DNA of 63,332 bases, counting the filler, from Octopus bimaculoides (Eukaryota): NCBI RefSeq assembly GCF_001194135.2. It is 3 parts of 3 records of this genome, joined end to end, with 100 filler letters (N's around TTAATTAATTAA, not from the genome) between each part and the next. Parts side by side here need not be neighbours in the genome. Positions count along the whole stretch, not along the records: positions 1 to 25,404 come from NC_068985.1; 2 more parts are not named here. One strand, written 5' to 3'. The notes under the pieces were generated by a model, which worked only from the letters and a program-made list of their open reading frames with translations, did not search any database and was not told where the DNA came from. Each line of letters begins with the position of its first letter. Positions within the stretch are counted from its first letter, which is position 1. The position numbers were made by a program, and so were the translations under genes. This document shows, in pieces, positions 1,831 through 25,404 of this stretch.

Positions 1831-2199
1831 TTAGTATTAAAATAAAAATAGGGTGGTGAGTGACTGAAATGGTAGAGTGATGGATTAAATGTCTTGTGGT
1901 ATTTAATAATATGCCTTTCCGTCTGAGTTCAAACCCTACCAGGATTTTTCTGGGCTTGATAATATAAATATTAATCAAGTTTTGAGGTTGATATCTATAA
2001 CTGACTGTTCTCTCCACCTCCCATCCTTCATCCTCCTAAAAATTGTAGCCTTGTGCAAACATTAGAAATTATTATATCAAATATTAGAAATAATTTATTA
2101 CTCTCACAGTCAGTTGAATCACTGGCAAATACTAGAAAAGAATATGCTTTGCTAAGGAAGCCTAGCACAATTGAAACATTACCAAAGTTGCACCATGTG

Positions 2200-2460
2200 G
2201 AGGTGCATAGCTTAGTGGTTAGGGTGTTGGACTCATGATCATAAGATTGTGGTTTCAGTTCCCAGACCAGCAACAAACACAATATGTTCTTGAGGCAAAA
2301 CACTTCATTTCACATTGTTCCAGTTCACTCAGCTGGCAAAAATAAGTAATCCTGTGATGAACTGGTGTCCTGTCCTGTCCAGGTGGGGAATTTATACACC
2401 ATGGAAAACAGGAAACCAGCTTAGGAGTTGGCATGACTCAAGAAAGTAACTTTATCTTTA
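2200..2460 (+). mobile_element. tRNA-derived SINE
   Basis: A-box TAGCTTAGTGG and degenerate B-box GGTTTCAGTTCC, CORE-like TCTTGAGGCAAAACACTT, short simple tail. Confidence 0.7.
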
Positions 2461-2559
2461 CCTAAAGTTGCACTGTACATACCAAAGATGAGATGGAATT
2501 AACATTAGTCTTTTAGCTAATGTTTTATCTCATCACTGCATGCATGATTCATATTTTAG

Positions 2560-2790
2560 TTAAACCTTTTGATACCAATCCACCTGAGACTGCTTTTGGT
2601 TTTATGATACAAACGTTTTGTTTTAAATGACTTACATCAAAATCTTCCATCAAAATTTTATATCAATTTATGTCCCAAACACCAACTTAATAATGATAAG
2701 GTTATTTTATTACATTCTTCATTATTTTTTAACAGAATGAAATTAAGGCAAAATATTTCAATAGAATTATATGGTTGCAATATTAGCAAC
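2560..2790. mobile_element. Non-autonomous DNA-transposon-like repeat (piggyBac/MITE-like left end TTAAACCTTTTGATACC)
   Basis: Recognised from memory as an abundant octopus repeat beginning TTAACCCTTT; right end degenerate. Confidence 0.4.
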
Positions 2791-3248
2791 ATGCCAGAGT
2801 AATCCCATATTAAAGAATTTATATTTTAATTAGAATTTCTGTTAAAAATTTAAAGAATTAGATCATGACCTTTCAATGGGCCTGCTTTAGCATAATATAT
2901 GCAACAGTATATATATAAAGTTACAGATATTTTATCACCTCTTCAGAGTCTTGATAATATTGAAAAGTAATTGAAACACACAATCAGTATACTCATTAGA
3001 AAGTTATTAGAAATAATAGAAAGTGTTAAATCTTTGGACTGGTTACTTTTTATCCTTGATCAATTGATTATCTGGGTCTGTTATCACTCTTCCCACCTCT
3101 CTCTCTCTCTTTCTTAACACAGATTTTAACTAATTTCAGTATAAGTATATTATAGCTGTAAAAAGGTTTGAACCCAAAGCAACAGTATCTATATTCTGTC
3201 ACAAGTATTCTAAATGTCAAAAACACAATAAAAAATATCTCAACTGAC

Positions 3249-3452
3249 CTGAACAAGGTGGATATTTGAAAGAAACTGACTGGTTATGCTTGCTCCACAT
3301 GTGATAAGGACCACAAGCATAAATACTGGGTCCAGGTAATACTAATTTATGACTAGCATCATTACATTTCGGCTCACACAGCAGTGAATCATTTTCTTTC
3401 CAGCAATGTTGTGTACCTTGATATGGATCACTTGGTTTTTTACATTCAAATT
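3249..3452 (-). CDS. Exon: Sushi/CCP-like domain
   Basis: ttattcaacag|AA...G|gtcagt, 204 nt, phase 1/1. [67 protein letters not shown] follows the CxxPxxPxxG...C...C..GxW...PxC pattern. Confidence 0.88.
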
Positions 3453-6400
3453 CTGTTGAATAAAGTAAAAATTAAAATATTGTTCAACAGCTAATTATGA
3501 AGCAGAAGAAAATTTTGAAATAAAGAATATGCAAATACAAACCTTTTAAATGATAATGAAGTTTAATTTGAGAAAACATCTATTTATTATACTTTATTCT
3601 TGTAATAGGTTTGCAAGATCCTGGATGTGAATTCATGTGTTGAAACAAATCCTGATGTCTTGGGAGGGTCATTACATCAATAATAACAACACACACACAC
3701 TGATTCAATGCCACCTCTATATTCATCATCATCATCATTTAATGTCCATTGTCTATGCTCGCATGAGTTGGATGGTTTGACCAGGGTTGGCAAGTTGGAA
3801 GGCTGCACAAGACTCCAGCCTGATTTGGTATGGTTTCTACGGCTAGATGCCCTTGCTAACGTCAATACCTAGCCAATATCTAACTAACTAATTGATTGTT
3901 TGATTAAGCAGGCTTGGTTAGGATAATGAACCATGTGTCTTCCCTGAGCAGACCCTACAAAATAAAGAAACAAGCACAAGACTTTATGCACTGTATGTAG
4001 TTCTCTAGTTATGACCATAGAGGTAGGCTTAGAGTGTACATGTGGTGGCTAAGAAGAAATTAAATAATATCGTAAGGATGCCAGTAGAACCTGCCCTAGA
4101 TACTAGGGCAAACAATGGAACAGAATACAGTACTTATGCATTGAAAAATATATCTTTTTACTTGTAATATATATANNNNNNNNNNATATATAATGTATAT
4201 ATACTGTGCAAAACATGTCTATATGTACTGTACTTACGGTGGTTAAAAATTCTGAAGGTGCACACAGCTGATGAATTGTATTGATCAAATCCAATGTAGA
4301 TCACAGTATAGTCACCCCAATCAAAATTGGTAACTGAAAGTATAAATAAAATGGGCTATGTTTAGCAATGTTTAATGTAGTGTTAATATAGGTGGGTGAC
4401 ACAAAGATTGTGTGGTGGTAGGTCTAATATTCTTAGTGTTGTGGTGGTGGTAGCTGTGGTACCAGTGGTGGTAGTGGGTAGTTGTAGTAGTGGTGGTAAT
4501 GGCGTTGATGGTGACAGTAGCAACAGTGGCAATGGGGATGTTGATCTTAATGATATCAGTGTTATGATGATAATGGCTGTAATGATGATAGTGGAGATGG
4601 TGGTGGTGGTTGTGCTGCTGGTGCTGGTGTGGTGGAGATGCTTCACAGTATCTATTCCATATCTGTATGTTCAAATACTAGTTGCTCTCACCAAAACAGA
4701 AAAAGTAAATAAACGATATTTGTTCTGGTTCGTAATGTTTTAATGTTCTTAGAGTTCACTTTGTTGTAAACAGTTGGGTGGTTTTGGTCTCTGGTTCAAG
4801 GATAATTTCTTCCCTTCTTTCCACCAGTCTCCAAGACCCTGCAAAAAATATAAGGCCATGGGCACTGCCCTTCCTTCTCTGACATTTTTAACTTGTTTTA
4901 ATGTCCACTTTTTCGTTACTGTATGAGTTAGGTAGAATTCCTTGAGACAGAATTTCTAAGGCCAGATACCTTCCTTGTCACCAGCCTTCATCTATTTCAA
5001 ACAAGGTAATATTCTCCCATTGTCCTCCACATTTTCATGGAAAATTGAAAATAAATTACACTACTTATATAATATTGCTGCTCATGACTCAAGAAAGAAG
5101 ACGAGTATTACAGCAAGAATGAGTACTGTGCATAGCAGAAACATCCGACCCAGAGTCACAAAATCTGATTCAACAAAACTTGTGCCATGGTGTGGGAGTT
5201 TTGTCATCTACCTCAGTGAGTGGCCCTTGGCATCTATGGTGTCACAGTGGAAGGGGACAAAACACCCACAAAGCTGCTTCTCCATACGATGAGAAATCAA
5301 TTCTTGCATTGTCAGCAGACAAATGTTTGCCCAAAATATGTGACATTGCTGCTTATTCGTGACTATCACAGTGTCAAGATGAGACAGTCACACATTCATA
5401 CACACACACACACTTATATACACACACTGACATACATGCACACAAGCATAAATTTATACAATGGGTTTCCATAGTCAGCTGGTGATATAGTTAAATACAC
5501 ATGCTCCAATGCCAAGCATTGAGACTGAACCTGAAACCACCTGGCTAAAAGCAAACTTCTTAATCACACATACAAAAAAAAAATCTTAGTTTTCCATGAA
5601 ATGTGTTATTACCAAACAGAAAATAATTAAAAGAATTATAAATATTAAGCATACCTTCTGGTTCATAATTAAAAACAACTCTGTCAACATCTTTAAACTC
5701 TGGTTTGCTCCACTTCAGAGTACTCCAGGGCATAGATATATACAGCTTGTCAGAGGGGCATTTAATCACAGTTGGCAATGATACTGCAAATAGAAGTGAG
5801 ATTTATTTTGTTTAATCTATTTTTAATCTTTTGTTCTGAATGTAATGTACAAAATAGATAGAAATTGTCAAAAGCATCACATTGTAATCATCATTCAACT
5901 CTATCTGTCTACCTATCTATCTATCTATCTACCAGTCTGTCTCTGTGTGTATTTCTCTCTCTATATATATATATCAATCACCCACTACTGCTCTTGCAGC
6001 CTGAGGTGCCACCTAGGTACCACAACACCACTGTCTATCACCTTGGAGATACCTTACTTAATTCTCCCTCTCTCTCCCAAATGTGAAGACTCCTATGCAA
6101 AAACCTCTTGTCCAGCTCCACCCCTTGTATTTTAACCTCCATCTAGCATACAAAGGCAACATCTTCCTTCCCTGGGTTTTGTTGACTTACAAGCTACATG
6201 ATTTCAATAGTGCTAATGGCATGTAAAAAGCACCCAAATACACACAGTAAAGTGATTAGTATTTGGAAAGGCATCCAGAAGACACTGGAGTACGATGCAA
6301 TCCTAGACTAATTGAACCTTTACCAAACTATTCAACCAACGTCAGCATGGAAAATAGATACTAAGTGATGTTGATGATGATAATATGTATGTATGTCTGT

Positions 6401-9400
6401 TTGTCTCTGTGTATTCACATATCTGTATATAGATATACATGTTATATATATATATCCATATACGTGTGTAGATATATACATGGGATATATACATACATAT
6501 ATATATTAATAATAATAATAATAACAATAATAATCATAATAATAAGGATCTAGTTTTTTCATTTGCAAAATATGCATTTTTTAAAAGGAAGTAAAAAATC
6601 TGAAAATAGGCTATAATAATGTAGCCTTTCAGTTTCATTGCTTTGAAGGTATTATGTTGTGGAGAAAAAAAAATTGAAGAAAAAGTTGCTGAGGTTTAAA
6701 AATCGAAAAAAACTGAGTATTTTTAGCCAATAGCAAGACAGAAATTTTCTGCGTTTAGCGGAGCGTTGTCAACTTTGAGGCTGTACTCTGTGAAATTTAT
6801 AGTTTAGCATCTGACCTGTTCATTGTAGGTTTCTAAACAAACAGAAATACCTAATAAAATCAACATGTATCATCTTACTATTTCTTTTATCTAGTCATTG
6901 TATGTTATTATCGTTTTTTAAAATTTGTTATATCAATATATTTGTCTGTACGTGTTTACTTTATGTGTACTTCAGTATTATGTATACTTGCCATGTATTT
7001 ATGTACATCATTAATATATATGTGCGTGTGTGTGTGTGTGTGTGTGGGTGTAAACTATGGTAAGACTAAGGATCTAGTTTTTTTCATTTATAAAATATGC
7101 ATTTTTTAAAAGGAAGTAAAAATCTGAAAATTGGCTATAATAATGTAGTCTTCTAGTCTCATTGCTTTGAAGGTATTATGTTGTGAAGAAAAAAAGTTAC
7201 AGAGGTATAGAAATCAAAAAACGTATATTTATAGCCAATGGCGAGACAAATTTTCTGCGTTTAGCGAAGCGGTGTCAACTTTGAGGTTGTGCCCTGTGAA
7301 ATTTGTAGTTTAGCATCTGACCTGTTCATTGTAGGTTTCTAAACAAACAGAAATACCTAATAAAATCAACATGTATCATCTTACTATTTCTTTTGTCTCT
7401 TCATTATGTGCGTCTGTCTCCAAAACTCCAAAGTCGAGTAACGTTTTCATGCTTGGATTTGTAAACTACGATAAGAATAACACTGGTCAACAAAGAGTTT
7501 GTCCTAAGGAAAAGAATATCTGCATTTTATATGATTTTGCATGCAGAATTCAGAAATAACGTCAAATTATCTATATCACCCACAGTTTCTCTGTTCCACG
7601 GGCTAATTGACATTTTTATTAATAGAGTTAATCTAGTGAAATCATAAATCCAGCTATCTGAGTCAACGAGTCCCCAAAATATATGAAATGAAAAATATGT
7701 AAAAATACTAACACAGAAAAAGCATAGAAAAATACTAACACACAGAAGCACAGCTGCACAGACAACAGTGAACCACAACACAATGTGAGGCTGTCATGGT
7801 AACAAGCTTCTAATGACACACTGTCTGTTGATTGGCTAAAATTACCCAAATTTTCCAAATTTAATTCCAAATAACATCAGTTTCTTTAATTTACGGGATA
7901 AAGTAATTGGTTGATCGTAATCAATATTCAGAGTTGCATTGATACACAAAATTGAAAGCAATCTGAGCAAAATTAAGTGGGGCTCATTTTGCGAATGAGA
8001 AAGACCAAAACCAATAAGCAGCACAACCTCAAATGATGTCAGTTTAAAATTCCTTCTCCCTTTTTTTTTATCTTCAAATATTCCTACATAGCTACGCCAA
8101 AGAAAGTCAGTTAAAGATTTCTTCATCTTGTTTTTTTTTTGTTTACCTTCTCATGTTCTTAACTAGGTACTCTAATGAAAAGACGGCTTTGCCATGAGGC
8201 TAGCAGCACAGCACCAAAGAACATCAGTTTAAAATTTCTTTTCTTTTCTTTTTTTGCTTACCTTCAAATCTTCCTATGCCAAAGAAAGTCACTTGAAAAT
8301 TATCTCCCTCTTTTCTTTCTTTCTTTTTTTTTTTGTTTATCTTCAAATATTCNNNNNNNNNNNNNNNNNNNNNNNNNNNNNNNNNNNNNNNNNNNNNNNN
8401 NNNNNNNNNNNNNNNNNNNNNNNNNNNNNNNNNNNNNNNNNNNNNNNNNNNNNNNNNNNNNNNNNNNNNNNNNNNNNNNNNNNNNNNNNNNNNNNNNNNN
8501 NNNNNNNNNNNNNNNNNNNNNNNNNNNNNNNNNNNNNNNNNNNNNNNNNNNNNNNNNNNNNNNNNNNNNNNNNNNNNNNNNNNNNNNNNNNNNNNNNNNN
8601 NNNNNNNNNNNNNNNNNNNNNNNNNNNNNNNNNNNNNNNNNNNNNNNNNNNNNNNNNNNNNNNNNNNNNNNNNNNNNNNNNNNNNNNNNNNNNNNNNNNN
8701 NNNNNNNNNNNNNNNNNNNNNNNNNNNNNNNNNNNNNNNNNNNNNNNNNNNNNNNNNNNNNNNNNNNNNNNNNNNNNNNNNNNNNNNNNNNNNNNNNNNN
8801 NNNNNNNNNNNNNNNNNNNNNNNNNNNNNNNNNNNNNNNNNNNNNNNNNNNNNNNNNNNNNNNNNNNNNNNNNNNNNNNNNNNNNNNNNNNNNNNNNNNN
8901 NNNNNNNNNNNNNNNNNNNNNNNNNNNNNNNNNNNNNNNNNNNNNNNNNNNNNNNNNNNNNNNNNNNNNNNNNNNNNNNNNNNNNNNNNNNNNNNNNNNN
9001 NNNNNNNNNNNNNNNNNNNNNNNNNNNNNNNNNNNNNNNNNNNNNNNNNNNNNNNNNNNNNNNNNNNNNNNNNNNNNNNNNNNNNNNNNNNNNNNNNNNN
9101 NNNNNNNNNNNNNNNNNNNGCACAACACCAAAGAAACTTAATTTAAAATTTCTTCGCCCTCTTTTGGGCTTTTTTGTTTATCAATGTTTATCTTCAAGTA
9201 TTCCTACCTTGCTACTCCAAGGAAAAGATGACTTAGCCATGAGGCTAGCAGCACAGCACCAAAGAACATCAGTTTAAAATTTCTTTTCTTTTCTTTTTTT
9301 GCTTACCTTCAAATCTTCCTATGCCAAAGAAAGTCACTTGAAAATTATCTCCCTCTTTTCTTTCTTTCTTTTTTTTTTTGTTTATCTTCAAATATTCCTA

Positions 9401-12400
9401 CATAGCTACGCCAAAGAAAGTCAGTTAAAGATTTCTTCATCTTGTTTTTTTTTTGTTTACCTTCTCATGTTCTTAACTAGGTACTCTAATGAAAAGACGG
9501 CTTTGCCATGAGGCTAGCAGCACAACACCAGTCAGTTTAATATTCCCCCCTTTTTTCATTTTCTTTTTTTCTTTTGTTTGTCTTAAAATATTCATACCTA
9601 GCTACGCCAAAGAAAGTCAGTTAACAATTTCTTCTCCCTCTTTGCTTTTTTTGTTTATCATTAAATATTCCTACCTAGCTGCTCTGAAGAAAAGACCGTT
9701 TTGCCATGAGGCTTGTAGCATACACTTGAGTGAAATTCCTCTCCTCTCTATTATATATATACATATGAACGTAGTAGATAACAGCTAGCCTTTGGCCGCG
9801 TTTTGGACCCTGTTGTGTCCACTACTCTGATTGGTTGGTATTGGTGCAATTTATCTCTTTCTCTAGCATGCGCCAATATGCAGCCTTCAAATAAGGTCAT
9901 GTGTGACAGCCTGTTTTCTACCCAGCTTTGAGGCTACAATTCCTTATAAAACTCATTGTCTCAATGTCATTCAGTTCCAGACCTTTTAAGGTCTGGCCAT
10001 TGACCACACAAGACACCACCAGTTCCAGCAACACCACAACAGCAGCCACATGGGACTCACTAACTTCGTCCAACAGCATTCGGCCATCTCCATCTCTGTC
10101 GCCACCATTCGTCCTAACGTCAACATCTCTCTACATACACATCTCAACAAGCAACTCGCTCTGGTTACAACACTGCACTGTTCGTGAATTACTTCACCAT
10201 GGATCAACAGCAAGTATACAATCTGCAAGAACTCCTGTACCAAATGACCCAGGCAGCAGCATCTCAGCCACAACTTCATGTACGACATGTACCACAACCG
10301 GCTCGGCATCATCGCCGCGACTATCATGTACAATTGACTACGAACTGGTATTTATAATTTTTGTGTCTATGAACTTACTCCTCACTTCGATGGCTACAGA
10401 CTCTTTCACAGTCTCTTCTTCATCGCCATCCTTATATGTTCTTAACATGCATACGTCTATGCCTACACACACACGCATACATACTACTCTTATGTTGGCC
10501 TGTCTATTATTCTGTATATATGACGCACACACAATCACACATATTAACATATCAATAACTCTTCTCTTAAACATTCTACCCGGTTGTGTCTCTTATTTCC
10601 CTCTGACACATATATGCATTGTTCTATTTATATTTATTGTATCGACCGTGTGATGTACTAAGGAGCCATTCTTATCACCTCACTTTGCACAGATGTCACA
10701 AATCGGCAACCTGTTCCAGATCCTCAAGACTACAGAAACAATTATAATGGAAGGAGATACTCCACAGGTATCTCAACCTTCATGCCCATTATAGGGTTTT
10801 AGCACAATGCCAAATAACGTCGGTTTAAAATTTCGACCTCATGTTTATCTTAAATATTCCTACATAGCTGTGCCAAAGAAAGTCAGTTAAAGATTCTTCT
10901 CCCCCTTTGTTTTTTTGTTTATCTTCTTCAAATATTCTTACCTAGGCATTGTAATGAAAAGACGGCTTTATGATGAAGCTAGCAGTACAATGCCAAAGAC
11001 AGTCAGATAAAAATTTCTTCTCTCTCTCTTCATTTCTTCTTTTTTTGTTTCCTTCTCTTAAAATATTCCTACCAATCTACGCCAAAGAAAGTCAGTTTAA
11101 AATTTCCTCTCTAATGAAAAGATGGCTTTGCGATTGAGGCTGGCGGCACAGCACCAGAGAATGTCAGTTTAATATACCTTCTCCCTTAAAAAAATTTTTT
11201 TTATTTGTTTATCTTAAAATATTCCTGCCTAACTATGCCAAAGAAAGTCGGTTACAAATTTCTTCTCCACTTTGCTTTTTTTNNNNNNNNNNNNNNNNNN
11301 NNNNNNNNNNNNNNNNNNNNNNNNNNNNNNNNNNNNNNNNNNNNNNNNNNNNNNNNNNNNNNNNNNNNNNNNNNNNNNNNNNNNNNNNNNNNNNNNNNNN
11401 NNNNNNNNNNNNNNNNNNNNNNNNNNNNNNNNNNNNNNNNNNNNNNNNNNNNNNNNNNNNNNNNNNNNNNNNNNNNNNNNNNNNNNNNNNNNNNNNNNNN
11501 NNNNNNNNNNNNNNNNNNNNNNNNNNNNNNNNNNNNNNNNNNNNNNNNNNNNNNNNNNNNNNNNNNNNNNNNNNNNNNNNNNNNNNNNNNNNNNNNNNNN
11601 NNNNNNNNNNNNNNNGGTGTGATTTATTTATAAACAGCTAAAAGAAAACGGATAATACTGGTAAGTTGTTCAGTTATTTCCCTTGAATATTTTTATTTTT
11701 TTTATCCCCCTAAACTTGAAGATTACCCAGTTGAAAATATCTTTTCCCTGTTTTTTTTTATTTTGGCTTTTTGTTCAAGTATTCCTACCTAGCTACTCTA
11801 TTGAAAAGACGGCTTTGCCATGAGGCTAGCAGCACAAGCCAAAGAAAGTCTTTTCAATTTATTATTTTTTTGCTTATCTTAAAATATTCCTACCAATCTA
11901 CGCCAAAAGAAAGTCAGTTAAAAATTTCTTCTTCCGCTTTTCATTTTTCTTTTTTTTTGTTTATCATTTTAAATCATTGACATTTGGACCTGGTGAACAG
12001 AGATTTTATACAGGGTTCAAAATAGTAGACAAGAAGAAACTCAATGAATGGGTCAGGAAGATAAATATCACTGGTGATATCAGGACTGACATCACAGACT
12101 CCAACAATCTGATAAATGTAATCTCGATCTTTGTAGCTCGGAAGTTAGGTTTGAATGCCCAAGGTAAATGTCAACATAACCTAAAGGAACCATGGTGGAA
12201 AAGGAGAATAATGCAGTCTATTAACGGGACCAGAAAAAAATATTTTGGAACAGTGAGAGAAATATGTTGAGCTAGAGAAGAAGTGTAGAGTGAAGAGAAA
12301 GGGAATCAATGTTTTGATTGGCGCATTAAAACAGAGGTTGAAAGCTAAAGTGCATAAACTAAAGATATATGAACAGAAAATTGAGCAATATAGAGCTAAG

Positions 12401-15400
12401 ACTTTACAAACAATCAGAAACGAGTCTATCAGGAACCGGATGGGAAAGAAAAGGGTGAAAAAGCCATGCCAGATGCTGAAGAAAGTAAAAGATTCTGGGC
12501 AAACATGGTCTCCAGAGAAACAATGCAAAACTGAAGCAGACTGGTTAAAGAAACTCAAGGAGGAGAGTATCAGCAGGAGGATTTGAGAATAACTGAGATG
12601 ATTGGAGAACAGTGCAGGGGAATTCCTAACTGGAAAGTGCCTGGCCCAGATGGGGTTCAGAGATTTTGGTTTAAAAACTTCACAGGAGAATTGTAAGACA
12701 GCTGGACGAAATACTGAGTAGTGACATCCAAGTACCAGCCTGGATGACAAAAAGAAGAATGGTATTATGCCAGAAGGACCCAAGTAAAGTGAATGCAGTT
12801 GGAAATTTCTGACCAATATCTTGTTTGCCACTGACATGGAAACTGATGATGGCCATCATATTGAACAACATCTATAAGTACCTAGATGAGAACGACCTAC
12901 TACCAGTGGAACAAAAGGGATGTAGACGTAAAAGCATAGGAACAAAGGATCAGTTACTAATCGATAAGACTATCCTGGCTGACTGTAAGAAGAGACACAA
13001 AATTTTGGCGATGGCATGGGTGGACTACAGGAAAGCATGTGATATGGTTCCACATGTGTGGATTATTAAATGATTTAAACTGCTTAAGGTCTCCCACAAT
13101 ATCCTGAAGTTAATACAAAACTCAATGGCAATGTGGTAAACTGAACTCACAGCATGGGGAGATAAGCTGGGAGAGGTAAATATCACAAGAGGAATCTTTC
13201 AAGGGGACAGTCTGTCGCCTCTTCTATTTGTCTGCATACTGCCACTAACCAGCATTTTAAGAAAGTTGTGTGTGGGGTACATGCTAGGCAGAGTGAAAGT
13301 AAACAACCTGTGATATATGGATGACCTAAAGCTATTTGCTAAGACTGAGAAAAAAATTGAGTTTGACGGCAACTGTGCAGATGATTAGCAAAGATATTGC
13401 ATGGAATTTTCAAAAGGACGAAAATTAGTAAAAGCCATGGGATCAAGCTGGAAAGTGGTGGAACTATAAAGGAAGTCAGAGAGGAAGGATATAAGTACCT
13501 GGGTTTCATTGAAAGAGATAAGATGAAAGAAATGTACAGAAAATGTACATCCACAGTGCAGGATGTGCTCTGAGAAGGGAGAAAGTATAAGCCATATTGT
13601 TAGTGAGTGCTGTAATCTCACACAATGTAAATACAAAAGGAGACATGACAATGTGGCCAGATATGTCCACTGGCTGGTGTACAGTAAAGCAAACCTTGAG
13701 AGAGCCGAACAATGGTATGAATACAAGCCAGAGGGAGTAATGATAAATGAACATTACAAAATACTCTGCGATCTTAACATACAGTGCAACCAAGTCATAG
13801 AGGTGAGATGGCCAGATATTGTGATCATCCATAAAGATGAAAAAGAAGCAAAGATAATAGATGTTGCAATATCAGGTGATTCGAGGGTGAAATGTAAGGA
13901 AACAGAAAAGAGTGAGAAATACCAGCTGCTGTGAGATGAGATATGAAAGTTATGGGGCATGAGGAAAGTAATGGTGATACTGGTGGTAATTGGAGCATTG
14001 GGAGCAGTTTCGAAGAACTTTGAAAAGCATATTAAAAATATTGGAGCTGCTGTCAGGCTCGAAGTGATCCAGAAGACAGCTTGCATTCTAAGGAAATTAT
14101 TGTCTCTTTGAGTCACAGGAGAAGGCACTACTTGAAACCTTTGGTAATTTGTTATTGCCTGCTTTCAAGTAAAGATCAACTGGAAATTAAGAACTATCCA
14201 AGAGTCTCTCGGAATAACAATAATGATAATAATAGTGGCTTGACAGACAGTACAAACCCCCATTAGACGCAATATCTTCAATACCATGAGACTGGATACT
14301 GTGCAACATCTTAAATAATAGTAATAATAACTAGCAGAAAGACTGCCCTCCAGGCAGTTTTCTGCTAGTCATTTGGTAATATTTTCACAGTTGATTTTCA
14401 ATTCTATGTCTAATTATCTCTTTGTATAATGATACTCACTTGCTTAGTAAATATTGCTTTCAGTATTTTATCACAGTCATGATCTTTTTTAAACAGATAT
14501 CAAGGTAGTCCAACTACATTTAGTGTGCAAAAAAATAGCAGCGATCACAAGAGATTTTTGAATATCTATAGTGTATCAGATAGTCATAGCAACAAAGGCA
14601 CTTGATAATTCTTAGATAAAGATGGAAAGGAAATAAGTGATACGTGTATGTGTGTGAGAGAGAGAGAACATTGCAAATAACAAATGAAATTAACATGAAA
14701 TGACAAAAATCATATAAATAAAAGTTCTTTAAAAACTATCTTGTACTGAATAGTTAAATTTGTGAACTTGAAATATTCAATAATAAAAGGAATGTAAATT
14801 TTCCTGAAAACTTCAATTTATAAAAACTCTCACATGCTTAGTAAATATTTCTTTCAGTAATTTATCATGGTTGTAATATATTTCTAATTTAAACAGACTT
14901 GAAGGTAACCCAGCTACATTTAGCATGCTAGAAATAGCAGCAATCATATAGTTATTATTGTAAGGCTTATAGTATTCCAAACAGTCATACCAACAAAATC
15001 ACTTTGTAATTTTTTTTTTTTAAATTATACCTGTATATTAAAAAAATTTTCATTTTATCAAAAATATTCATTTAACAAACTCTGGAAACTGATATTATTC
15101 TTGAAATTGTGCCTTGTATCAAAGTTATACAGCTATTTTGTCTAATAGTATTCATTCATTCAATAAATTATTTCTTTACATTACATATATAGAATAAACT
15201 GTGAGTTTTGCAAATAGCAAATTAAATCTTGAAATGAATATATATTAAATTATCATTAATGAAAACAGAGGTGAGAGAGAGTGAGAGACTGTTGCAACAA
15301 ATTACCATTAAACATTAAAGTCTACTCTGCAATGAATGCAGGTTGTGCACTGTTTATCTTGATAGCAGATCACCATCTTGCGCACATGTGGTTGTGATTC

Positions 15401-15579
15401 ATGTCCCTGGTGTAGTACCCTTATCAGACAGGCAGTCATGATGGGTATATTGGGCTTCTGTATGCCAGTGTCACTCTGATGACATGCACTGCCCTCTCAC
15501 TCCTCGATAATAATAATAATAATAATAATATAAGAATGGAAGTCAACAGGCTATAATGGTGTGTGCGTGTTTATATCTA

Positions 15580-15644
<65 letters not shown>

Positions 15645-18600
15645 TAGACACTTATTGATTTTGATGTGTGAGCATGAAGTTATTTGTTGCTTACTCATTG
15701 AATTGGCATGTGAAGTGGTTGAGTATTCTACAGACACAACTATCTTTTATATAATCCATTGGTAGAATCAACTTGACATTGTGTGTGACAAGACTGGACC
15801 ATTGAATTACAGGAAAAGTTCATCCAACAAGCTTTCTAACCTCTTTCCATTTACCAAATTTCACCCACAAGACTTTGGGCTACCCACTACTATGATAAAA
15901 GCACTTGTCCAAGATGCCACTCAGTGGGATTGAACTTAAAACCATATGTTCTTTCGGTGAGCTTCTTAATCCCTCAGCCAAGCCTACGTCCATGTGTGTG
16001 TGAGTAGTTAATTTTGATATAACGAATTTTTGTTCGACCTTCATTACAACAATAATTGACTCATATTTCTTGCAGGTTGAGTGACTATTTTGCTCAAAAA
16101 CCTATTATGTTTAACCCTTAAACAAGATGCACCCCAGCCACCCCACTGTATATATATCCAAGAACAACATCCATGAACAATGCCAGCAGCAGCCAACCAT
16201 TGAAGACCAAGTCCAACAGCACAAGTTACTGTGGTTTGGCCACATCTGTAGGATGAGCACTGAAAGTCTACCATGCCAACTTATGCAGTGATAGTGACCC
16301 ACACACTGGAGAATCCAATGCAGTGCACCAAAGAAGACACGGGCAAAGCAAATTGAGGAAGACCTCAAGTCACAACACCTTGACCTTGGGAATACTTATG
16401 CTGGTGCCATGGATCAGAAAGCATGGAATCACCTCATCACCAAAGTCCATCATACAGCAGTACCCACAGTAGCATATTAGATGCCAGAAGGAGAATAACA
16501 TCAACTGACAGAAAAAAGATTTTTTTCCTTTCAAAGAAATTTCTTCAGCAGGTTTGGTCTCATGGCAGTTGGTACTCTAACCACTCACAGGCATTTTGTT
16601 TATATAGAAATTAATGTGCAGAAACATCTTTTAAAATTGTTACTTACTTTTATTTGTTTGTGGACAATTTTTCTTGATCTCACACATATCTGGTTTTATT
16701 TCAGAGTAGAAATCCAATAAATAATTTGGCAACATTAGCATATTTTTCACAAGATTGCTCAAAATATTCGATGGTGTTTGGCTTGGGTTTTTCCAAAAAT
16801 TCTGTAATTCTTCCTTCGATAAAGTTTGGTTGAGAATCCATAAACGACTGATCCGACCAGAGAAATAAGAGGGTTCAATTGCATGTTGTTTTGTGTTTAA
16901 TTTCCCACCAACAACTAGTAAACCCCTGAAATGTTAATGAAGATAAGTTTTACAAAGTAGTTTTCTGAAACTAGAATTATGTTTAAGTGAAATAATAATA
17001 CAGGCACTGGCTGTCATGACTTCTGGGCTTAACTGGTTGGCAGTTTTATCATGTACATTTTGCTGCCTTGGTATAAAAGATGGGCTACACCAAATATTCT
17101 GCTCAGTACCACAGATTTCCTTGTCAGTTGTATGACCTTAACCAGTTTAGCATGTATGTCCCTTGGTGGCAAATGATATGTGCATCTCTGATCATGAGCA
17201 GAAGTTGGGGGAGAGCATCATAGGAATTCTTTGGAGTTTGAATAATTCACCTTTGAAAACATGGGTGTTTCATTTAACATCCTTAAACAACCCTTATTCA
17301 GAGACCTTTTGTGTGAAGTGGGCTACTTGACTTGAAGAAAATTCTAATTTGGGCTCCACCTGCAAGGTCATGCTTTATGGTAAAGTCCAAGTCCAAGTCA
17401 GTTCCCTCGTTGATACAGTGTATACCTTCAGTGCTGATATCAGAATGGAGTTTGGACTGAGAAAGTGTGGTGTATTAGTATTGAAGAGAGGCAAAATCAA
17501 ATGTATGGACGGACTAATGATACTGTCGGGGGAGCTTATGAAGCAGATAGAAGAGACAGGCTATAAGTACTTGGGGATTTTGGAAATGGAGAAATTAATG
17601 GAGAAAGAAATGACAGAAAAATTTAAGGTGGAGTACTTACATAAACTGAGACTGATCCTTAAATCGAAATTAAATGGACCGTAGATGAACTAAACAAATT
17701 AGACAGAAAGACAAGTAAGTTGCTAACTAGATAAGGGTCACCCCACCCAAAAAGTGACACAGACAGACTGTATATACCAAGAAAAAGAGGGGAAAGTGGA
17801 CTTATTGGATGCAAACATAGCATTAGAGCAGAAGAAAACAACATAGCATGGTATGTAAAAAATGCCACAGAACTGCTATTATTAGTAGGAAGGTCAGGCT
17901 TGGGTAGGATGAAAGATTGCAAAGATAAAGCACTATACAAGAAATTGAAAATAGGTGGGTAAAAAAAAAGAATGCATGGTCAATTTCATAGGGATGCTGA
18001 AGATAAGACAGACAAAGAAAAAAGATGGCTGTGGATGACTAAAAGTGATTTAAAACTGGAAACGGAGGCTCTAATCTGTGCTGCCCAAGAGCTAGCACTA
18101 AGAACAAACTACATAAAATACAGAATAGACAACACAGCAGAAAGTGATAAGTGAAGAATCTGCGGACAAAACGGTGAAACCATATGGCATATTACCAGCC
18201 AATGTACGCCACTAGCCTAGGAGGAATATAAGAGATGCCACGACAATATAGCTAGGCTTGTTCATTGGACACTTTGCAACAAGTATGGACTTGACAGAGC
18301 AAAAAATTGGTATGACCACAAACCTGAAGGCATTGTCGAAAATAGAAATGCAAAGATTCTATGGGATTTTATAATTCAATGCAACCATGAAATTGAGAAT
18401 AAGAAGCTGGACATAGTTTTAATTGAGAAAGAAAATAAACTATGCTGGATCATAGACATAACATGCCCAGCTGACAACAAGGTACATGACAAGGAAGAAA
18501 GAAAAGTTGAGAGATATGACAGGTTAGCTTGGGAAGTTAAGCAGTTGTGGTCGCTGAAAAAGGTGGCAGTTGTACCAATAATTGTTGGAGCCCTGGGAAC

Positions 18601-19483
18601 AGTGGGCAAAAATCTCAAGAAGTACATGGCAGAAATAGGGGCTGCAATAAAGGTGGAGCACTTGCAGAAAACAGCACTGCTTGGAACTGCTCGAATACTC
18701 CAGAAGGTGCTCAAAAAATAGGTGTTACCTACAGTGTCACCTGTTCACTGGTAGTGAACAACTGACACTATAGTATACCTCTAGCATAAGAAGCTGTGCA
18801 AAGGCAACAATAATAATAACAATAATTCTTTCTTTCTGCTATAGGCACAAGGTTATAAATTAGAGAAGTGTGTTAGTCAATTTCATCAATCCTAGTTCTC
18901 ACCTGGGACTTATTTTATCAACTCCCAAAACAAATGAGAGGCAAAACCTTTCGCCTCAAATTGATATCAACATGGAAAATCCTAGATACCAAGAAGGCCC
19001 CATTTCATGATTTCAATAGTTTACAAAAAGAAACCGATCCAGTTACTTAATCATTTTTGCTTAAAAGTTTCAGAACCTTTTTCACTTATGCCAGCATAAA
19101 AAGAATGGCTACAATAAAAATCAATGACTACTTACAGTGATGGAATTTGTTTTCCATTACCAAGATTTTTTTCTAAAGTTAAGTCTCCATTGTGATAAAC
19201 CTCGAGGATTCCATTACTATTGCTCCATTGTAGTATCACATGATGCCAGATTCCATTAGTTAAAGATTTCAAGGTAACGGTGTGTGTGTCATCAAACATC
19301 TGGAGGGACAGAGTGTTACCATGTAAATGTACCAATTCTTTGGCGCCGAATACTGGATTTACCAAATCACTGAAATAGAAATCCATGTACTTCCGTAAAA
19401 TGAACCTATAGATTAGTATTATTTCATGATTGACTGGATACTGTTCAAGACCTCTTGTTTACCGTAACAAGAAACACATAAAA

Positions 19484-19517
<34 letters not shown>

Positions 19518-21257
19518 CATGTGCATTATGTCTGTATGGATATATACATACATACAGCACTGGTGTAGCTATGTGGTAAAAGGCTTGCTTCCCAACCACA
19601 TGGGTCTGAGTTCAGTCTCACCAAAGCCTTGTGAGTGGATTTGGTAGACAGAAACTGAAAGAAGCCCGTCATGACAGCACCGCATGACTGGCATCCATGC
19701 TAGTGGAGCGCTAAGAGCACCATCCAAGCGTGATTGTTGCCAGGGCCACTGACTCCCCNNNNNNNNNNAGCGTCACCTTACTGACACTTGTGCCAGTGAT
19801 ACATGAAAAACAACATTCTAGCGAGGGCGTTGCCAGTGCTGCTGGACTGGCTCCTGTGCCGGTGACACGTAAAAACACTATTTGAGTGTGGTCATTGCCA
19901 GTACCGCCTGACTGGCCCTCATGCCAGTGGCACGTAAAAGCACCCACTACATTCTCACAATGGTTGGCGTTAGGAAGGGCATCTAGCTGTAGAAACTCTG
20001 CCAGATCAGATTGGAGCTTGGTGCAGCCATCTGGCTCACCAGTCCGCAGTCAAACCGTCCAACCCATGCCAGCATGGAAAGTGGACGTTAAACGATGATG
20101 ATCATGATATATATATATATCTACGTATACAGATATATATATGTGTGAGTGTGTGCGTGTGTGTGTTTGTTCCCCCATCATCGCTTGACAACCAATGTTG
20201 GTGTATTTATGTCCCTGTAAACTAGCAGTTCAGCAAAAGTGACTGATAGAATAAGTACCAGGCTTACAAAAAATTAGTCCTGGGAGTCGATTTCTTCTAC
20301 AAAAAAAAATACCTTTTAAGGCAATGCTCCAGCATAGCTGCAGTCAAATGACTGAAACAAGTAAAAGAAATAAAAGAAATACATGATTAAGATGATTGTT
20401 TCCCCAAGCATAAGATCTCAGGTTAGGATTTCGGAATCATCAATTCAAGGCTTCATATTCCATAGCCAGGTACATATGGTCATCCTGGACAAAGCAATTC
20501 ATTACACATTGCTCCAATCTATACAGCTGACAATGTGTTGCACCTGCTGCAAAATGATGCCTCAGAGATTATTAAACCAAGATCTTGCAAATACAAGATG
20601 TCAATAGCACCTTACGTTTGCAAGATGTGGCATACAACAAGATGACTGAAAGTTATGCATACATGCATGATGATGGCCATCCACTCATGACTGAAAGCCA
20701 TTACTGACCTTTAGGAACATTGTGCACTCACAACTACCTTATACTTTACACTTGCAGTTTTGTTGGTGACTAATGAGCCCTGCTCTTGACAAACATACAT
20801 GACTGCAAATATTGCAGACCAGGCTTTCCCTATTCATTACACTAGCAGTGAATTTTCAAGCAGCATGCTTAAATTCTTCATTGGTATTGATTTTCAAAGG
20901 TATTGATTCTCTCTACCCATTTCCTCCATCTGTGGCGATGACAAGCATTGCTCTTCCAAGTCAGCCTCCCGCAATTCACAGGCCTTTCATGAGGACTTTA
21001 CACAGTCCTTAAATCGCAGTTTTGACTTCTGCTGGGGTTGCTTTCCAATGACAAGTTCTCCATATAGCATCTATTTAGGGATCCTACTATCATTCATTCT
21101 AACAAGGTGTCCAGGTCAACATAATCAGTGTTTGTGCACCATCACTTCAATATTCAAGATATTAGCTTTCCTCAGGACCTGTGTATCTGGAGTTTTTAAG
21201 GTCCAGCCAACATTCAGAATGTGTCTCAGACATCTCTGATGGAGGCGTTCAAGGACC

Positions 21258-21289
<32 letters not shown>

Positions 21290-23282
21290 AGAAAGAGCAA
21301 ACAATACTTACTTTGATCCATAGAGACATATACTTGTAGCAGATGCCTGTTTCTCATTGTTCATGTCTTCATAGTACTTTATCCAGAAGGTCATGGTCAG
21401 CTGATCTTCTATGATATGACTAAACTCATGTGCATTCATTGGTATAAAAAACCCTTTGGGTTTCAGAACTACCAAGTCACTTCCGTAGGGGATATCTATA
21501 AGATTATAATTAATTTTGAAATTTTAGTTTGGAGTATTTTCTTTTTGCTACTTCTTTATATATGTGTATATGTTGTGAACAGTGGTGGTGAAGGTGGCGA
21601 ATTATGTATTTAGGGATGTTAAAAAAATCTCTTGTATCATATTTATTTAGTTAATTAATGTATGCATTTTCCATAAAACCAGAAAGCTATGACAGACTCA
21701 GAAAGGTATCTTACAACTTTATGCATAAGCATAGAACACAACAAAAAAAAAAAACATCAATAAAGGAAGAAAAAGAAGAAACAAAGCAACTGTTAAATGT
21801 TTCTATTGTGAAATTTTTAAGTAACATCCATGACTTGGAAGATTTTAGTGTTCCTTGATATTGAAGGGTATCTCCAATATCTCAATCTCAATCATACAAC
21901 TATGTCTAATCCAATTGGAATAGATTTTTGTTCATAATGTCTTCCAAGTTGTTTTAGAATATTTTCCAAAGCTCCTTCATAATTATTGTTTGTTTCTAGT
22001 TGACCCCTAATGATAGTGAAGTAATTATGGAGGGTCAAAGTTTGAGTCATGGTATGAAGTCTGCCTCAGATATTTTCAAGTTCTGCTATCTTGAAATAAT
22101 CCAAATTATCTATTATGATGGCAGAGCTAGTAAATGATTCATATTGACTTTTAACTCTGTATCAAAGCAGGCTTTTTACATCCCATCATTTTGAGTTCAC
22201 ATCAGAAGCTGCATAAAATAGATACTAGTTGTTCAAAACTAACCACATTGAGTGAATTCTGATTATTTGCCCACAAAATAATATATTTCTCTCATACAAA
22301 CTTGCATTTGACATAAACTCACTTTTCTGTGACATCAGAAGAAAATTACAAGCTTCACTGCTTTCTTTATGTCACTTTTTTTACATCCTTTATTGTATAT
22401 ACAACACTACAAAATATATACAATGCTACATGAATATAAAATTCTCAAGTAGCACAGATGGTTTAGCGATAGTTCTTGCATCAATCCGCAAACAATACAG
22501 TTGGATAACCTCACTTGGCAGCTAAGTGTTCATAGGCTATCCCTATAGGTGGCGTCCTTTCAGCTGTTCACTTTGGCTGCATACCAAAAAGAATTCAGTT
22601 GGCGATTGGCATTTAACAAGCACAGACCTGTGTGTGACTCTCACAGCATTTATGCCACACATGTGCCATTAGTTCATCATGTTCTCCATTAGAATGTTTA
22701 GCCTATTTCAAATGGATTATTATCTTTGAGGGCTATCTCCTCAAGTTCCCTTTTTATTTTTCCTGAAAAAACTCTTTTGCTAATTACTAGGAGAATAACA
22801 TCGCATGTTTGGAGACACATCTTCTGTTGTTACATTTCTTGTAGTCTTTGTAAAATCCCACTGGGATGTTTGAGTCATATTCCATGCCAGAATAAACTTT
22901 TATATTTATTGGAGCCTTTTAAGTGACTTGCTTCTTTCTTGTTAGAATATACAAAGGGTATTCGACAGGAAGTGCTGAGAAAGGAACACAGAATGTCGGG
23001 AGAGAAAACTACCTATCCAGCATGACTACTTGTAACACTCCCAAATCATAAATGTACACACACACATGCACCACATACACACATGCAAAAAATCACAACA
23101 TATACAAGTTATTTGTTCCTATGTAGTGTTTCTTTAACTGTTACCTTTGAGACATTGTGACCCCCATTTGTTTGAAGGACACATGCAGATTGCTTGATTA
23201 TTCGTTACTTGACATTTCTGTCCAGCACATGATTTCTTGGAGCATGGATTAGTAACATTCTCACAAACTTCACCAGTATATC
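3249..23282 (-). CDS. Partial multi-exon gene: extracellular EGF + pentraxin/LamG-like + HYR + Sushi-like protein (SVEP1/fibropellin/uninflatable-like superfamily), 7 exons, 1263 nt, both ends missing
   Basis: Hand-spliced exons 23282-23145, 21495-21312, 19369-19136, 16925-16648, 5783-5655, 4333-4238, 3452-3249. All have AG acceptors and GT donors, junction phases 1,2,2,1,1,1 are compatible, and there is no stop: [102 protein letters not shown]. Confidence 0.9.
3722..3870 (-). mobile_element. SINE/RTE-type 3' tail with (GAT)n end
   Basis: Reverse complement reads ..GTTAGCAAGGGCATCTAGCCGTAGAAACC..CATCCAACTCATGCGAGCAT..TAAATGATGATGATGAT, homologous to 19960-20105 and 24630-24840. Confidence 0.8.
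4238..4333 (-). CDS. Exon: second half of HYR domain
   Basis: tactttcag|TT...C|gtaagta, 96 nt, phase 1/1. (V)[31 protein letters not shown] fits HYR FxxGxxxVxYxAxDxxxNxAxCxFxI. Confidence 0.92.
4390..4650. repeat. Degenerate (GGT/GAT/AGT)n trinucleotide low-complexity tract
   Basis: Direct reading; produces the poly-V/T/H pseudo-ORFs in the track. Confidence 0.8.
5395..5570 (-). mobile_element. tRNA-derived SINE head
   Basis: Reverse complement TGTGATTAAGAAGTTTGCTTTTAGCCAGGTGGTTTCAGGTTCAGTCTCAATG matches the head at 19560-19620. Confidence 0.65.
5655..5783 (-). CDS. Exon: first half of HYR domain
   Basis: ctatttgcag|TA...G|gtatgc, 129 nt, phase 1/1. [42 protein letters not shown] fits HYR PxxxxCPxD...WxxPxFxD. 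Confidence 0.92.
6215..6385 (+). mobile_element. Diverged SINE/RTE-type 3' tail
   Basis: GGCATGTAAAAAGCACCC..GGAAAGGCATCCAG..CAGCATGGAAAA..GATGATGAT; same family as 3722-3870, opposite orientation. Confidence 0.7.
6543..7394. repeat. Direct duplication of a ~340-bp sequence (6543-6888 and 7067-7394)
   Basis: Both copies start TAAGGATCTAGTTTTTT and end CATCTTACTATTTCTTTT; the last ~90 bp are essentially identical, the middle has indels. Confidence 0.9.
8030..11965. repeat. Intronic satellite/minisatellite of related ~60-80-bp monomers with higher-order structure, interrupted by two gaps and an insertion at 9714-10790
   Basis: Recurrent motifs TATCTTCAAATATTCCTAC, GCCAAAGAAAGTCAGTTAAA and GAAAAGACGGCTTTGCCATGAGGCTAGCAGCAC; blocks 8066-8200 = 9381-9520 and 8200-8352 = 9240-9395. 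Confidence 0.9.
9714..10700 (+). mobile_element. Probable LTR (TGT...ACA, ~990 bp) with ~90 bp of following internal sequence, inserted in the satellite
   Basis: Starts TGTAGCA immediately after satellite GAGGCT, ends GATGTCACA, TATAAAA near 9945, followed by PBS-like AATCGGCAACC. No TSD found. Confidence 0.45.
11975..14215 (+). mobile_element. R4/Dong-clade RLE-type LINE, disrupted and internally deleted (copy A)
   Basis: [102 protein letters not shown]; ends in a TAA-like tract. Confidence 0.92.
14330..14369. other. 40-bp near-perfect inverted repeat (hairpin)
   Basis: ACTAGCAGAAAGACTGCC-ctcca-GGCAGTTTTCTGCTAGT: 17 paired bases with one bulged G. Confidence 0.85.
14436..15010. repeat. Old diverged direct duplication (~14436-14610 and ~14828-15010)
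   Basis: Shared TGCTTAGTAAATATT..TTTCAGTA..TAAACAGA..AAGGTA..CTACATTTAG..AAATAGCAGC..ATAGT..AGTCATA.CAACAAA..CACTT. Confidence 0.75.
15340..15530 (+). mobile_element. 3' end of a (TAA)n-tailed retroposon
   Basis: Ends GATGACATGCACTGCCCTCTCACTC followed by (TAA)n; the same terminus occurs inverted at 49565-49597. Confidence 0.7.
15690..15995 (-). mobile_element. tRNA-derived SINE (head ~15840-15990) plus adjacent repeat fragment
   Basis: Reverse complement GGCTGAGGGATTAAGAAGCTC..GGTTTTAAGTTCAATCCCACTGAGTGGCATCTTGGACAAGTGC..CCAAAGTCTTGTGGGTGAAATTTGGTA. Confidence 0.7.
16040..16500 (+). mobile_element. RTE-clade LINE 3' remnant
   Basis: [48 protein letters not shown], the RTE C-terminal LRWFGHVxRM..W..QIxxDL..AxDRxxW pattern. 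Confidence 0.8.
16648..16925 (-). CDS. Exon: C-terminal pentraxin/LamG-like domain and Cys linker
   Basis: catttcag|G...A|gtaagta, 278 nt, phase 2/1. [44 protein letters not shown]...[12 protein letters not shown] matches LVxG...FxGxIxxxxIWxxxLSxEEI. Confidence 0.92.
17003..17372 (+). mobile_element. Abundant interspersed repeat; homologous copy at 41337-41710
   Basis: Shared AAAGATGGGCTACA..AAATATTCTGCTCAGTACCACAGATTT..GATATGTG..CTCTGATCA..GAGCATCATAG..GAAACATGGGTGTTTT..CCCTTATTCAG. Confidence 0.85.
17373..18805 (+). mobile_element. R4/Dong-clade LINE, 5'-truncated at the RT catalytic motif (copy B)
   Basis: [75 protein letters not shown] KxDIV; ends GTGCAAAGGC followed by AAC(AAT)n. Confidence 0.93.
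19136..19369 (-). CDS. Exon: core of pentraxin/LamG-like domain
   Basis: tatttcag|T...CT|gtaagta, 234 nt, phase 2/2. Lies inside track ORF 19132..19386; [26 protein letters not shown] matches the LamG3/pentraxin DGxWHHVxxTWxxxxGxxxxYxDG motif. Confidence 0.93.
19558..20105 (+). mobile_element. Composite SINE: tRNA-like head, internal tandem subrepeats, RTE-like tail ending (GAT)n
   Basis: Head GCTATGTGGTAAAAGGCTTGCTTCCCAACCACATGG..GAGTTCAGTC; tail TTGGCGTTAGGAAGGGCATCTAGCTGTAGAAAC..GGACGTTAAACGATGATGAT. Confidence 0.85.
20150..20385 (+). mobile_element. SINE 3' portion with CpG decay
   Basis: CATCGCTTGACAACC..GATAGAATAAGTACCAGGCTTAC..TGCTCCAGCATAGCTGCAGTCAAATGACTGAAACAAGTAAAAG; remembered as an abundant octopus SINE body. 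Confidence 0.75.
20660..21255 (-). mobile_element. RTE (BovB-like) LINE 3' remnant
   Basis: [54 protein letters not shown], with stops. Confidence 0.82.
21312..21495 (-). CDS. Exon: N-terminal third of pentraxin/LamG-like domain
   Basis: cttatag|AT...AA|gtaagta, 184 nt, phase 1/2. [60 protein letters not shown]; LTMTFWIK resembles the LamG/pentraxin (F/L)TxxxW(I/V)K strand. Confidence 0.9.
23145..23282 (-). CDS. Exon: end of one EGF plus a complete EGF domain
   Basis: ttgtaatag|GA...AAAG|gtaaca, 138 nt, phase 1/1. (G)[45 protein letters not shown] has canonical EGF spacing C-x4-C-x4-C-x8-C-x-C-x8-C. Absent from the ORF track. Confidence 0.93.
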
Positions 23283-23759
23283 CTATTACAAAGACAAAAT
23301 AATGTAAATAATTTAAAGGTACAAGAGTAGAAAAGTTATTGCTGCTTTGCTTAAAGACAAGCCTTACCTGGGTATCATTAGTAACAATAGACGTTTATAA
23401 TATATGTATTTTCAAAACATTTCTTTTCCAAAATTTTCTGTGAATTATATAAAAACTATTTTCAATCTTTTGAATGTTTTCTAGTCCGACAAACAACATA
23501 ATTTAAGGTTTCTAAACACTTAGTTGGATAATCTGAGAAACGTGTGCATGTATGTATACGTAAATATNNNNNNNNNNNNNNNNNNNNNNNNNNNNNNNNN
23601 NNNNNNNNNNNNNNNNNNNNNNNNNNNNNNNNNNNNNNNNNNNNNNNNNNNNNNNNNNNNNNNNNNNATATATATATATATGCATATATATATATATATA
23701 TGCATATATATATATGCTCATATATCATTTGTATTATTATATATGCCTGTCCAAAATTA

Positions 23760-25070: not shown

Positions 25071-25350
25071 CTACTCTGTAGTATTTCAAGATATTTTAAC
25101 GTAATTTTGGTAACTATACCTGTTAAAATGAGATGTCAGTATTGTTTTCATTTTTGTGCAATTTAGATGACAATATTATTCACTGCATCTTCTATATATC
25201 TATATATACTTCCTATATATATCATTATCATCATTTTCATGTTCACTTTTCCCTGCTTGCATGGGCTGAAGGAAATTTATTGAGGCTCATTTTCAGCCAG
25301 ATGTTCTCCCTATTGACAAATCTCAACTGTTTTCAAGTGAGATATTTACG

Positions 25351-25404
<54 letters not shown>

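Follow-up and report, generated by a model that had tools for sequence, protein, structure and literature searches.

A 20-kb stretch of the minus strand of Octopus bimaculoides DNA (positions 3249–23282) very probably belongs to a real animal protein-coding gene, seven spliced exons of which encode 421 extracellular residues of a large mosaic protein. It lies in the first piece (1–25404, from NC_068985.1) of the window, by which we mean the whole stretch of 63,332 nucleotides. Read from the N-terminal side, the modules are the tail of one EGF module, a complete EGF-like module, a pentraxin-like LamG domain spread over three exons (separated by two phase-2 introns), a linker with two cysteines, an HYR domain over two exons and a six-cysteine Sushi-like module. 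The boundaries between modules fall on phase-1 introns, as in the classic layout of exon shuffling, and this set of modules matches that of the matrix and adhesion proteins of the SVEP1/Polydom group. As an ordinary, divergent fragment of that known kind, the feature adds one SVEP1/Polydom-like mosaic whose pentraxin-like domain has lost its disulfide and its signature, and it brings no new mechanism or open question.

Seven exons on the minus strand

The exon model was rebuilt from the sequence alone, by listing the stop-free stretches of the minus strand and reading their borders for splice sites. A first pass gave six obvious exons, whose joined frame comprises 389 codons. Exon 6 was then found by enumerating all the stop-free phase-1/phase-1 AG..GT intervals between exons 4 and 7. 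Ten of the candidates are 96 nt long; the one at 4238–4333 has the best splice consensus (acceptor TTTCAG, donor GTAAGT), and no other of the ten encodes an HYR-like peptide. The seven exons sum to 1263 nt, that is 421 codons, without any stop. The sequence-only reading of this DNA had described seven minus-strand exons with canonical splice sites, matching phases and 421 stop-free codons, and the independent rebuild agrees with it exactly in the number of codons and in the outer end points.

In the direction of the gene, exon 1 (23145–23282, 138 nt, phase 1 at both ends) encodes the tail of a preceding EGF module and one complete six-cysteine EGF-like module. Exon 2 (21312–21495, 184 nt, phase 1 in and 2 out) encodes the N-terminal third of the pentraxin-like LamG domain, exon 3 (19136–19369, 234 nt, phase 2 at both ends) the core of this domain, and exon 4 (16648–16925, 278 nt, phase 2 in and 1 out) its C-terminal third followed by the linker; exons 2 and 4 share the same donor, AAA/GTAAGT. 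The HYR domain is divided between exon 5 (5655–5783, 129 nt), which holds its N-terminal half, and exon 6, which holds its C-terminal half, while exon 7 (3249–3452, 204 nt) encodes a six-cysteine module that would be Sushi/CCP-like, by the spacing of its Cys, Pro and Trp residues only. These last three exons have phase 1 at both ends. The intron phases are therefore 1, 2, 2, 1, 1 and 1, with both outer ends of the model open at phase 1; the phase is 1 at six of the eight exon boundaries, in keeping with the earlier statement that the junctions are mostly of phase 1. An alternative acceptor for exon 3 at 19405, 36 nt upstream and phase-compatible, was rejected: it would add 12 residues to an otherwise gap-free alignment with KAL3867860.1, a hypothetical protein from the freshwater mussel Sinanodonta woodiana.

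The model has neither a beginning nor an end. No initiator methionine, signal peptide, transmembrane segment or stop codon was found within the window at either end of it, and no additional exon was detected in 1–3248, in 23283–25404 or in the introns, whether by listing open stretches, by tblastn with 111 relatives of exon 3 (including KAL3867860.1) or by searching for EGF and Sushi spacing patterns. Exon 1 opens with YTGEVC, the tail of an EGF module, so the rest of that module must sit upstream. Since its phase-1 ends are open and it has no start, signal peptide or stop, the fragment comes from the interior of a larger protein, probably secreted or bound to a membrane, which supports what had been proposed from the sequence.

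The same earlier reading stressed that five of the seven exons are missing from the track of open reading frames (ORFs). This is true at the default cut-off of 60 residues, where only exon 3 (ORF 19132–19386) and exon 5 (ORF 5560–5778) are listed, exon 2 appearing as well when the cut-off is lowered to 50 residues, but the observation is trivial. The exons looked hidden because a bacterial-style list of frames running from ATG to stop cannot display the internal exons of eukaryotes. That the gene is "hidden" is an artefact of the list, not a matter of biology; what the case illustrates is that an ORF track overlooks ordinary eukaryotic exons.

Domains that cross the exon junctions

The Pfam profiles were scanned against the 420-residue spliced peptide, and the HYR region was also scanned alone. 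Laminin_G_3 (PF13385) matches residues 75–225 over profile positions 16–150 of 151, with an E value of 5.9e-9 and 36.7 bits for a cut-off of 27.6; Laminin_G_2 is above its cut-off too (25.9 bits vs 22.9). Ten PDB sequences are matched with E below 0.01 and all of them are pentraxins. These matches cover residues 118–242 of the model (E 1.6e-6 to 8e-3), and the best of them, neuronal pentraxin-2 (NPTX2, 9lad_C, E 1.6e-6), gives an alignment that crosses the junction between exons 3 and 4. When the exon 3 peptide alone was compared with 1.84 billion representative sequences, 111 matches were obtained at E≤1e-3, the best at 4e-23, with 22–47% identity; nine of these relatives were scanned with Pfam, and all nine carry Pentaxin/Laminin_G_3 domains, most of them in several repeats. 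Conversely, tblastn of the 111 relatives on the window marks a single region, 19069–19449 on the minus strand. The LamG/pentraxin module of the sequence-only reading is confirmed by these profile, PDB and library matches. The proteins that match exon 3 best consist of 5–9 tandem pentraxin/Laminin_G_3 domains, two of them from the hemichordate Ptychodera flava, unlike the mosaic of the window, which has a single such domain.

With the pentraxins of known structure (NPTX1/NPTX2, PTX3, SAP and the SAP-like pentraxin of Limulus) the domain shares the motifs W-H-H, G-x-L-x-x-G and F-x-G-x-hydrophobic-S. It differs from the solved pentraxins in that it lacks both the signature and the disulfide pair, scores higher with Laminin_G_3 than with Pentaxin, and is a module of a mosaic rather than a free pentraxin subunit. 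The classical pentraxin disulfide has lost its two cysteines (TMTFWIK where KAL3867860.1 has ASLCFWMK, and WHHVIL where it has WHHICV), and an unpaired cysteine is found at residue 103. The domain is a pentraxin-like LamG domain, not a canonical pentraxin. It is followed by a linker of 38 residues (residues 243–279; 16648–16760, minus strand); two cysteines stand in it as C-x5-C (DMCEIKKNC), and no known family is matched.

The HYR module announced by the sequence-only reading is found as well. Scanned alone, HYR (PF02494) is matched with 25.3 bits for a cut-off of 21.7 (E 2e-5), over profile positions 6–79 of 81 and across the junction of exons 5 and 6, while in the scan of the whole model the score is 20.5 bits, just under the cut-off. 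The two conserved cysteines of HYR are present, at residues 287 (IKCP) and 346 (AVCTF). The HYR domain of KAL3867860.1 is the best phmmer match to that of the window, and the Smith–Waterman alignment of the two runs without a gap across the same junction. The full-length match, the two conserved cysteines and the neighbouring cysteine-rich, CCP-like module are common to proteins of the HYR family; what distinguishes the window is that its HYR is single, is split by a phase-1 intron and scores only marginally when the whole model is scanned.

These matches bear on whether there is a gene at all. The free choice of AG and GT borders makes it possible to build stop-free chains in any AT-rich sequence, and the composition of the exons resembles that of the introns (36.7% vs 36.3% G+C), as would be expected if the model were a chance concatenation of open stretches with no gene behind it. 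The probability that 421 random codons stay open is approximately 4e-11 for a stop-codon frequency of 0.055, a value which is itself weakened by the free choice of splice sites; the domain matches that cross the junctions are therefore the real evidence. The junctions between exons 2 and 3 and between exons 3 and 4 both fall within one Laminin_G_3 match, that between exons 5 and 6 falls within one HYR match, and the first three junctions are supported by the unbroken alignment of exons 1–4 to KAL3867860.1. Two Pfam matches, scoring above their cut-offs or close to them, thus continue unbroken across junctions, and PDB and library matches go down to E 4e-23. The splice consensus is also enriched: the acceptors are all YAG and are preceded by 9–13 pyrimidines in the 17 nt upstream (mean of the window 8.1, standard deviation 2.8); all seven donors agree with 5–6 of the 7 consensus positions, as against 60 of the 1347 GTs of the minus strand (4.5%), and four of the eight GTAAGT hexamers on this strand are donors of the model. 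The Pfam, PDB and library matches and the alignment to KAL3867860.1 refute a chance concatenation, to which we give a negligible probability.

The two cysteine-rich modules at the ends of the model are less firmly identified. The EGF-like module of exon 1 has six cysteines spaced C-x4-C-x4-C-x8-C-x-C-x8-C, with an aromatic/Gly residue before the sixth, and a search of all six frames of the window with the EGF spacing pattern gives a single match, which is in exon 1. The only PDB sequences matched by this exon are EGF repeats of Notch1, with all the cysteines aligned and weak E values (0.28–0.87); the EGF modules of KAL3867860.1 are also weak matches to exon 1 by tblastn (E 0.25–1.5).

In exon 7, a proline follows the first of the six cysteines and a tryptophan precedes the last (C-KKP…C…C…W…PPC). 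Four of these cysteines are those of the Sushi consensus, and the two extra ones are also seen in the six-cysteine Sushi repeats of KAL3867860.1. The Sushi spacing pattern likewise has one match in the six frames of the window, and this is exon 7. The Smith–Waterman comparison of exon 7 with a six-cysteine Sushi repeat of KAL3867860.1 gives a weak score of 40, for 24.5 ± 5 with shuffled sequences (z approximately 3), and 4 of 500 shuffles reach 40. No PDB sequence is matched by exon 7, and an ad hoc hidden Markov model built from the Sushi repeats of KAL3867860.1 scores about 0 bits on it. The AlphaFold2 model obtained from the single sequence is all-beta, with a predicted local distance difference test (pLDDT) value of 49; its Foldseek matches are meaningless and the CCP fold is unsupported. 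Exon 7 would encode a putative Sushi-like module, as suggested by the spacing of its Cys, Pro and Trp residues and by the weak match to the mussel protein.

Relationship to SVEP1/Polydom proteins

KAL3867860.1 is the sole library match that aligns in one stretch to the EGF module and to the whole pentraxin-like domain. This protein of 3881 residues gives Pfam matches to VWA, HYR and Ephrin_rec_like, together with 15 EGF, 18 Sushi and 4 Pentaxin matches, and by this predicted domain set it is SVEP1/Polydom-like. Each of its four EGF–pentraxin units gives one continuous alignment with residues 2–228 of the model (exons 1–4). The identity is 31–38% by tblastn over exon 1 and the core of exon 3, and roughly one third or less wherever an alignment can be made. 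The mussel protein differs from the window in that it keeps the cysteines of the pentraxin disulfide and the WHHIC motif, and its own HYR is not beside a pentraxin domain. It is a low-identity relative of the family and not an orthologue.

The domain set of Polydom/SVEP1 has been described (PMC12549020). In human SVEP1, the HYR units precede the EGF block on its N-terminal side, and Sushi repeats come after the pentraxin domain (PMC12549020). The window has in common with this group the EGF, pentraxin-like, HYR and Sushi/CCP types of module (the last by spacing only), and the EGF module stands directly before the pentraxin-like domain. In the window, on the contrary, HYR comes after the pentraxin-like domain, from which it is separated by the 38-residue linker, assuming that no exon lies in the gaps of intron 4. 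The N-terminal vWA domain and the long C-terminal Sushi tail of SVEP1/Polydom are absent from the window and would fall outside the 25.4-kb piece.

A pentraxin-like domain followed by HYR was seen in none of the 111 library relatives. It is possible, albeit doubtful, that the fragment belongs to a polydom-like gene that is unannotated, restricted to one lineage and evolving fast. The order EGF, disulfide-less pentraxin-like LamG, HYR and six-cysteine CCP-like module was not seen in these 111 relatives, the nearest among 15 billion public proteins. Expansions of polydom-like genes in invertebrates, with reshuffled sets of domains, are already documented (PMC12549020). If that reading were true, the gene would provide a further example of domain shuffling in this expanding invertebrate family of matrix and adhesion proteins.

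A number of results weigh against the conclusion that these exons are part of a real gene for an extracellular mosaic protein. With the model peptide, Pfam gives no match at E≤10 for EGF or for Sushi (PF00084), and Pentaxin (PF00354) is below its cut-off (21.4 bits vs 25). The search for EGF, LamG, HYR and Sushi matches, named beforehand as a check on the sequence-only reading, therefore returned LamG and HYR by Pfam, and neither EGF nor Sushi. The EGF module of that reading stands by its six-cysteine pattern and by the Notch EGF matches (E about 0.3), not by a profile; the Sushi module stands by its Cys/Pro/Trp spacing and the weak match to KAL3867860.1, and has no Pfam, PDB or structural support. 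The PROSITE-type pentraxin signature is HxCx[ST]Wx[ST]. It is absent from the window, where the segment HVILQWSN, facing HICITWTT in NPTX2, retains only the H and the W. The composition of the exons, given above, is uninformative. The whole spliced peptide finds nothing at E≤10 in a word-indexed homology search, and a collection of 15 billion proteins, which includes NCBI proteomes of molluscs, hemichordates and cnidarians, yielded no relative above approximately 40% identity (the matches to exon 3 being listed at 22–47%). There is no exact record of the protein encoded by ORF 19132–19386. With no close relative at hand, the gene could be missing from annotations, evolving fast or devoid of function. 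Lastly, the joins between exons 4 and 5 and between exons 6 and 7 cross scaffold gaps, and the support for them consists of scaffold, strand, order, phase and domain logic.

The lack of any close homologue or annotated protein in large collections would also be consistent with a non-functional copy, be it an unprocessed pseudogene or an inactive duplicate of part of an SVEP1-like gene, provided its inactivation was recent or occurred outside the window. The same can be said of the lost signature and disulfide cysteines of the pentraxin domain, of the unpaired cysteine at residue 103 and of the locus itself, which is saturated with transposon debris. We consider this explanation improbable, since the 421 codons are free of stops and frameshifts at the background stop frequency, and each of the 14 splice sites is both intact and strong. 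Moreover, the two pentraxin cysteines have been lost as a pair, which agrees better with constraint on the domain than with decay, and the EGF, HYR and Sushi-like modules retain every conserved cysteine pair. This paired loss, the pairs that are kept elsewhere and the five N-x-S/T sequons of the model peptide, taken together, are easier to reconcile with a working extracellular protein than with one in decay. Such a protein would be secreted or membrane-anchored, and would act in cell–matrix adhesion or ligand binding, given its sequons, its paired cysteines and its exclusively extracellular types of module; the gene is presumably expressed. The exon model could seed the annotation of a large matrix or adhesion gene in an assembly that is rich in gaps and repeats.

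Gaps, introns and repeats of the locus

The piece 1–25404 has a G+C content of 36% and contains six runs of N. Its high density of microsatellites and interspersed repeats is typical of animal genome scaffolds. Four N gaps lie within the span of the model; they are all intronic and inside repeats, and leave the exons and reading frames untouched. The 10-N gap at 4176–4185, in intron 6 (3453–4237), lies 53 nt past the donor of exon 6, inside a (TA)n run that is seen on both flanks. Intron 4 (5784–16647, 10,864 nt including its gaps) holds two large gaps, of 767 N (8353–9119) and 333 N (11283–11615), both inside a degenerate repeat array. The last gap, of 10 N (19759–19768), is in intron 2 (19370–21311), inside a repeat unit that resembles a short interspersed nuclear element (SINE), and its flanks align to a 114-nt tandem unit at 24348–24589.

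The gaps raise the question of whether the exons come from one locus. In a scaffolding chimera, real exons from two or three paralogous loci (exons 1–4, exons 5–6 and exon 7) would have been placed side by side, or extra exons would lie in the gaps. The N gaps that separate exon 4 from exon 5 (767 and 333 N) and exon 6 from exon 7 (10 N) are compatible with this idea, as no domain bridges these joins, and so is the order of the pentraxin-like and HYR domains, unseen in the 111 relatives. On the other hand, all the exons are collinear and on the same strand, with compatible phases, and the flanks of each gap share the same type of repeat (TA run, array or SINE-like unit), as they do in gaps that arise from the collapse of repeats within one locus. 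The gaps look like repeat-collapse gaps inside one locus. The join between exons 2 and 3, the sole gap-crossing join that can be tested, is correct: its order and orientation are confirmed because one protein domain continues across the gap at 19759–19768. A chimera is, all told, improbable, slightly more so than a dead copy of the gene, although further exons could be hidden inside the gaps of intron 4.

The array of intron 4 extends over about 7.8–11.96 kb (7800–11960) and encloses both large gaps. It is made of degenerate, T-rich units of approximately 90–200 nt with a common core, GCCAAAGAAAGTCAGTTAAA. Copies that are 93–100% identical occur about 1–1.3 kb apart (8140–8352 vs 9185–9397, 93%; 8061–8216 vs 9375–9530, 99%), so that the assembly may have duplicated part of the array. 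A Ser/Thr-rich ORF of 241 residues (9928–10653, plus strand), which two array blocks enclose, is the longest gap-free ORF in the window and has no Pfam match.

Further along intron 4, a decayed retrotransposon of the type without long terminal repeats (non-LTR) occupies 12700–14130 on the plus strand, antisense to the gene. It is recognised by RVT_1 (E 3.5e-13), a YMDD motif and a Cys/His tail, and is interrupted by several stops; RVT_1 was found by Pfam on joined frames, the single plus-strand ORFs of the intron having given no Pfam match. A second, 3' fragment of a similar long interspersed nuclear element (LINE) is found in intron 3 (17300–18750, plus strand), with a weak zf-RVT-like match and the same IIDVAI and VIGALG tail motifs as the first copy. 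The open stretches at 990–1810 (minus strand), 16127–16291 (plus strand) and 21125–21304 (minus strand) carry motifs such as LEYCS, which we take to be those of the LINE ORF2 tail, and one such stretch starts 8 nt after the donor of exon 2.

The SINE-like element is richer in G+C and has an internal repeat of about 57/114 nt (GTTGCCAGTGCC…CTTGTGCGGGTGACACATAAAA). It is present at 24348–24589, 19700–20021, 24552–24692 and approximately 3680–3870, one of these occurrences being a tandem of 2.1 copies, and may resemble a common cephalopod repeat. In intron 5, a cryptic simple repeat (4372–4743) gives His/Thr-rich ORFs of 87–115 residues on both strands, which looks like low complexity rather than coding sequence. 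Scans of the window returned no Rfam family and no tRNA. Long microsatellites are found at 15572–15642, (TA)35; at 24149–24302, (TA)n; at 24836–24957, (TATG)n; and at 25354–25404, (AC)25, the last of which reaches the end of the piece.

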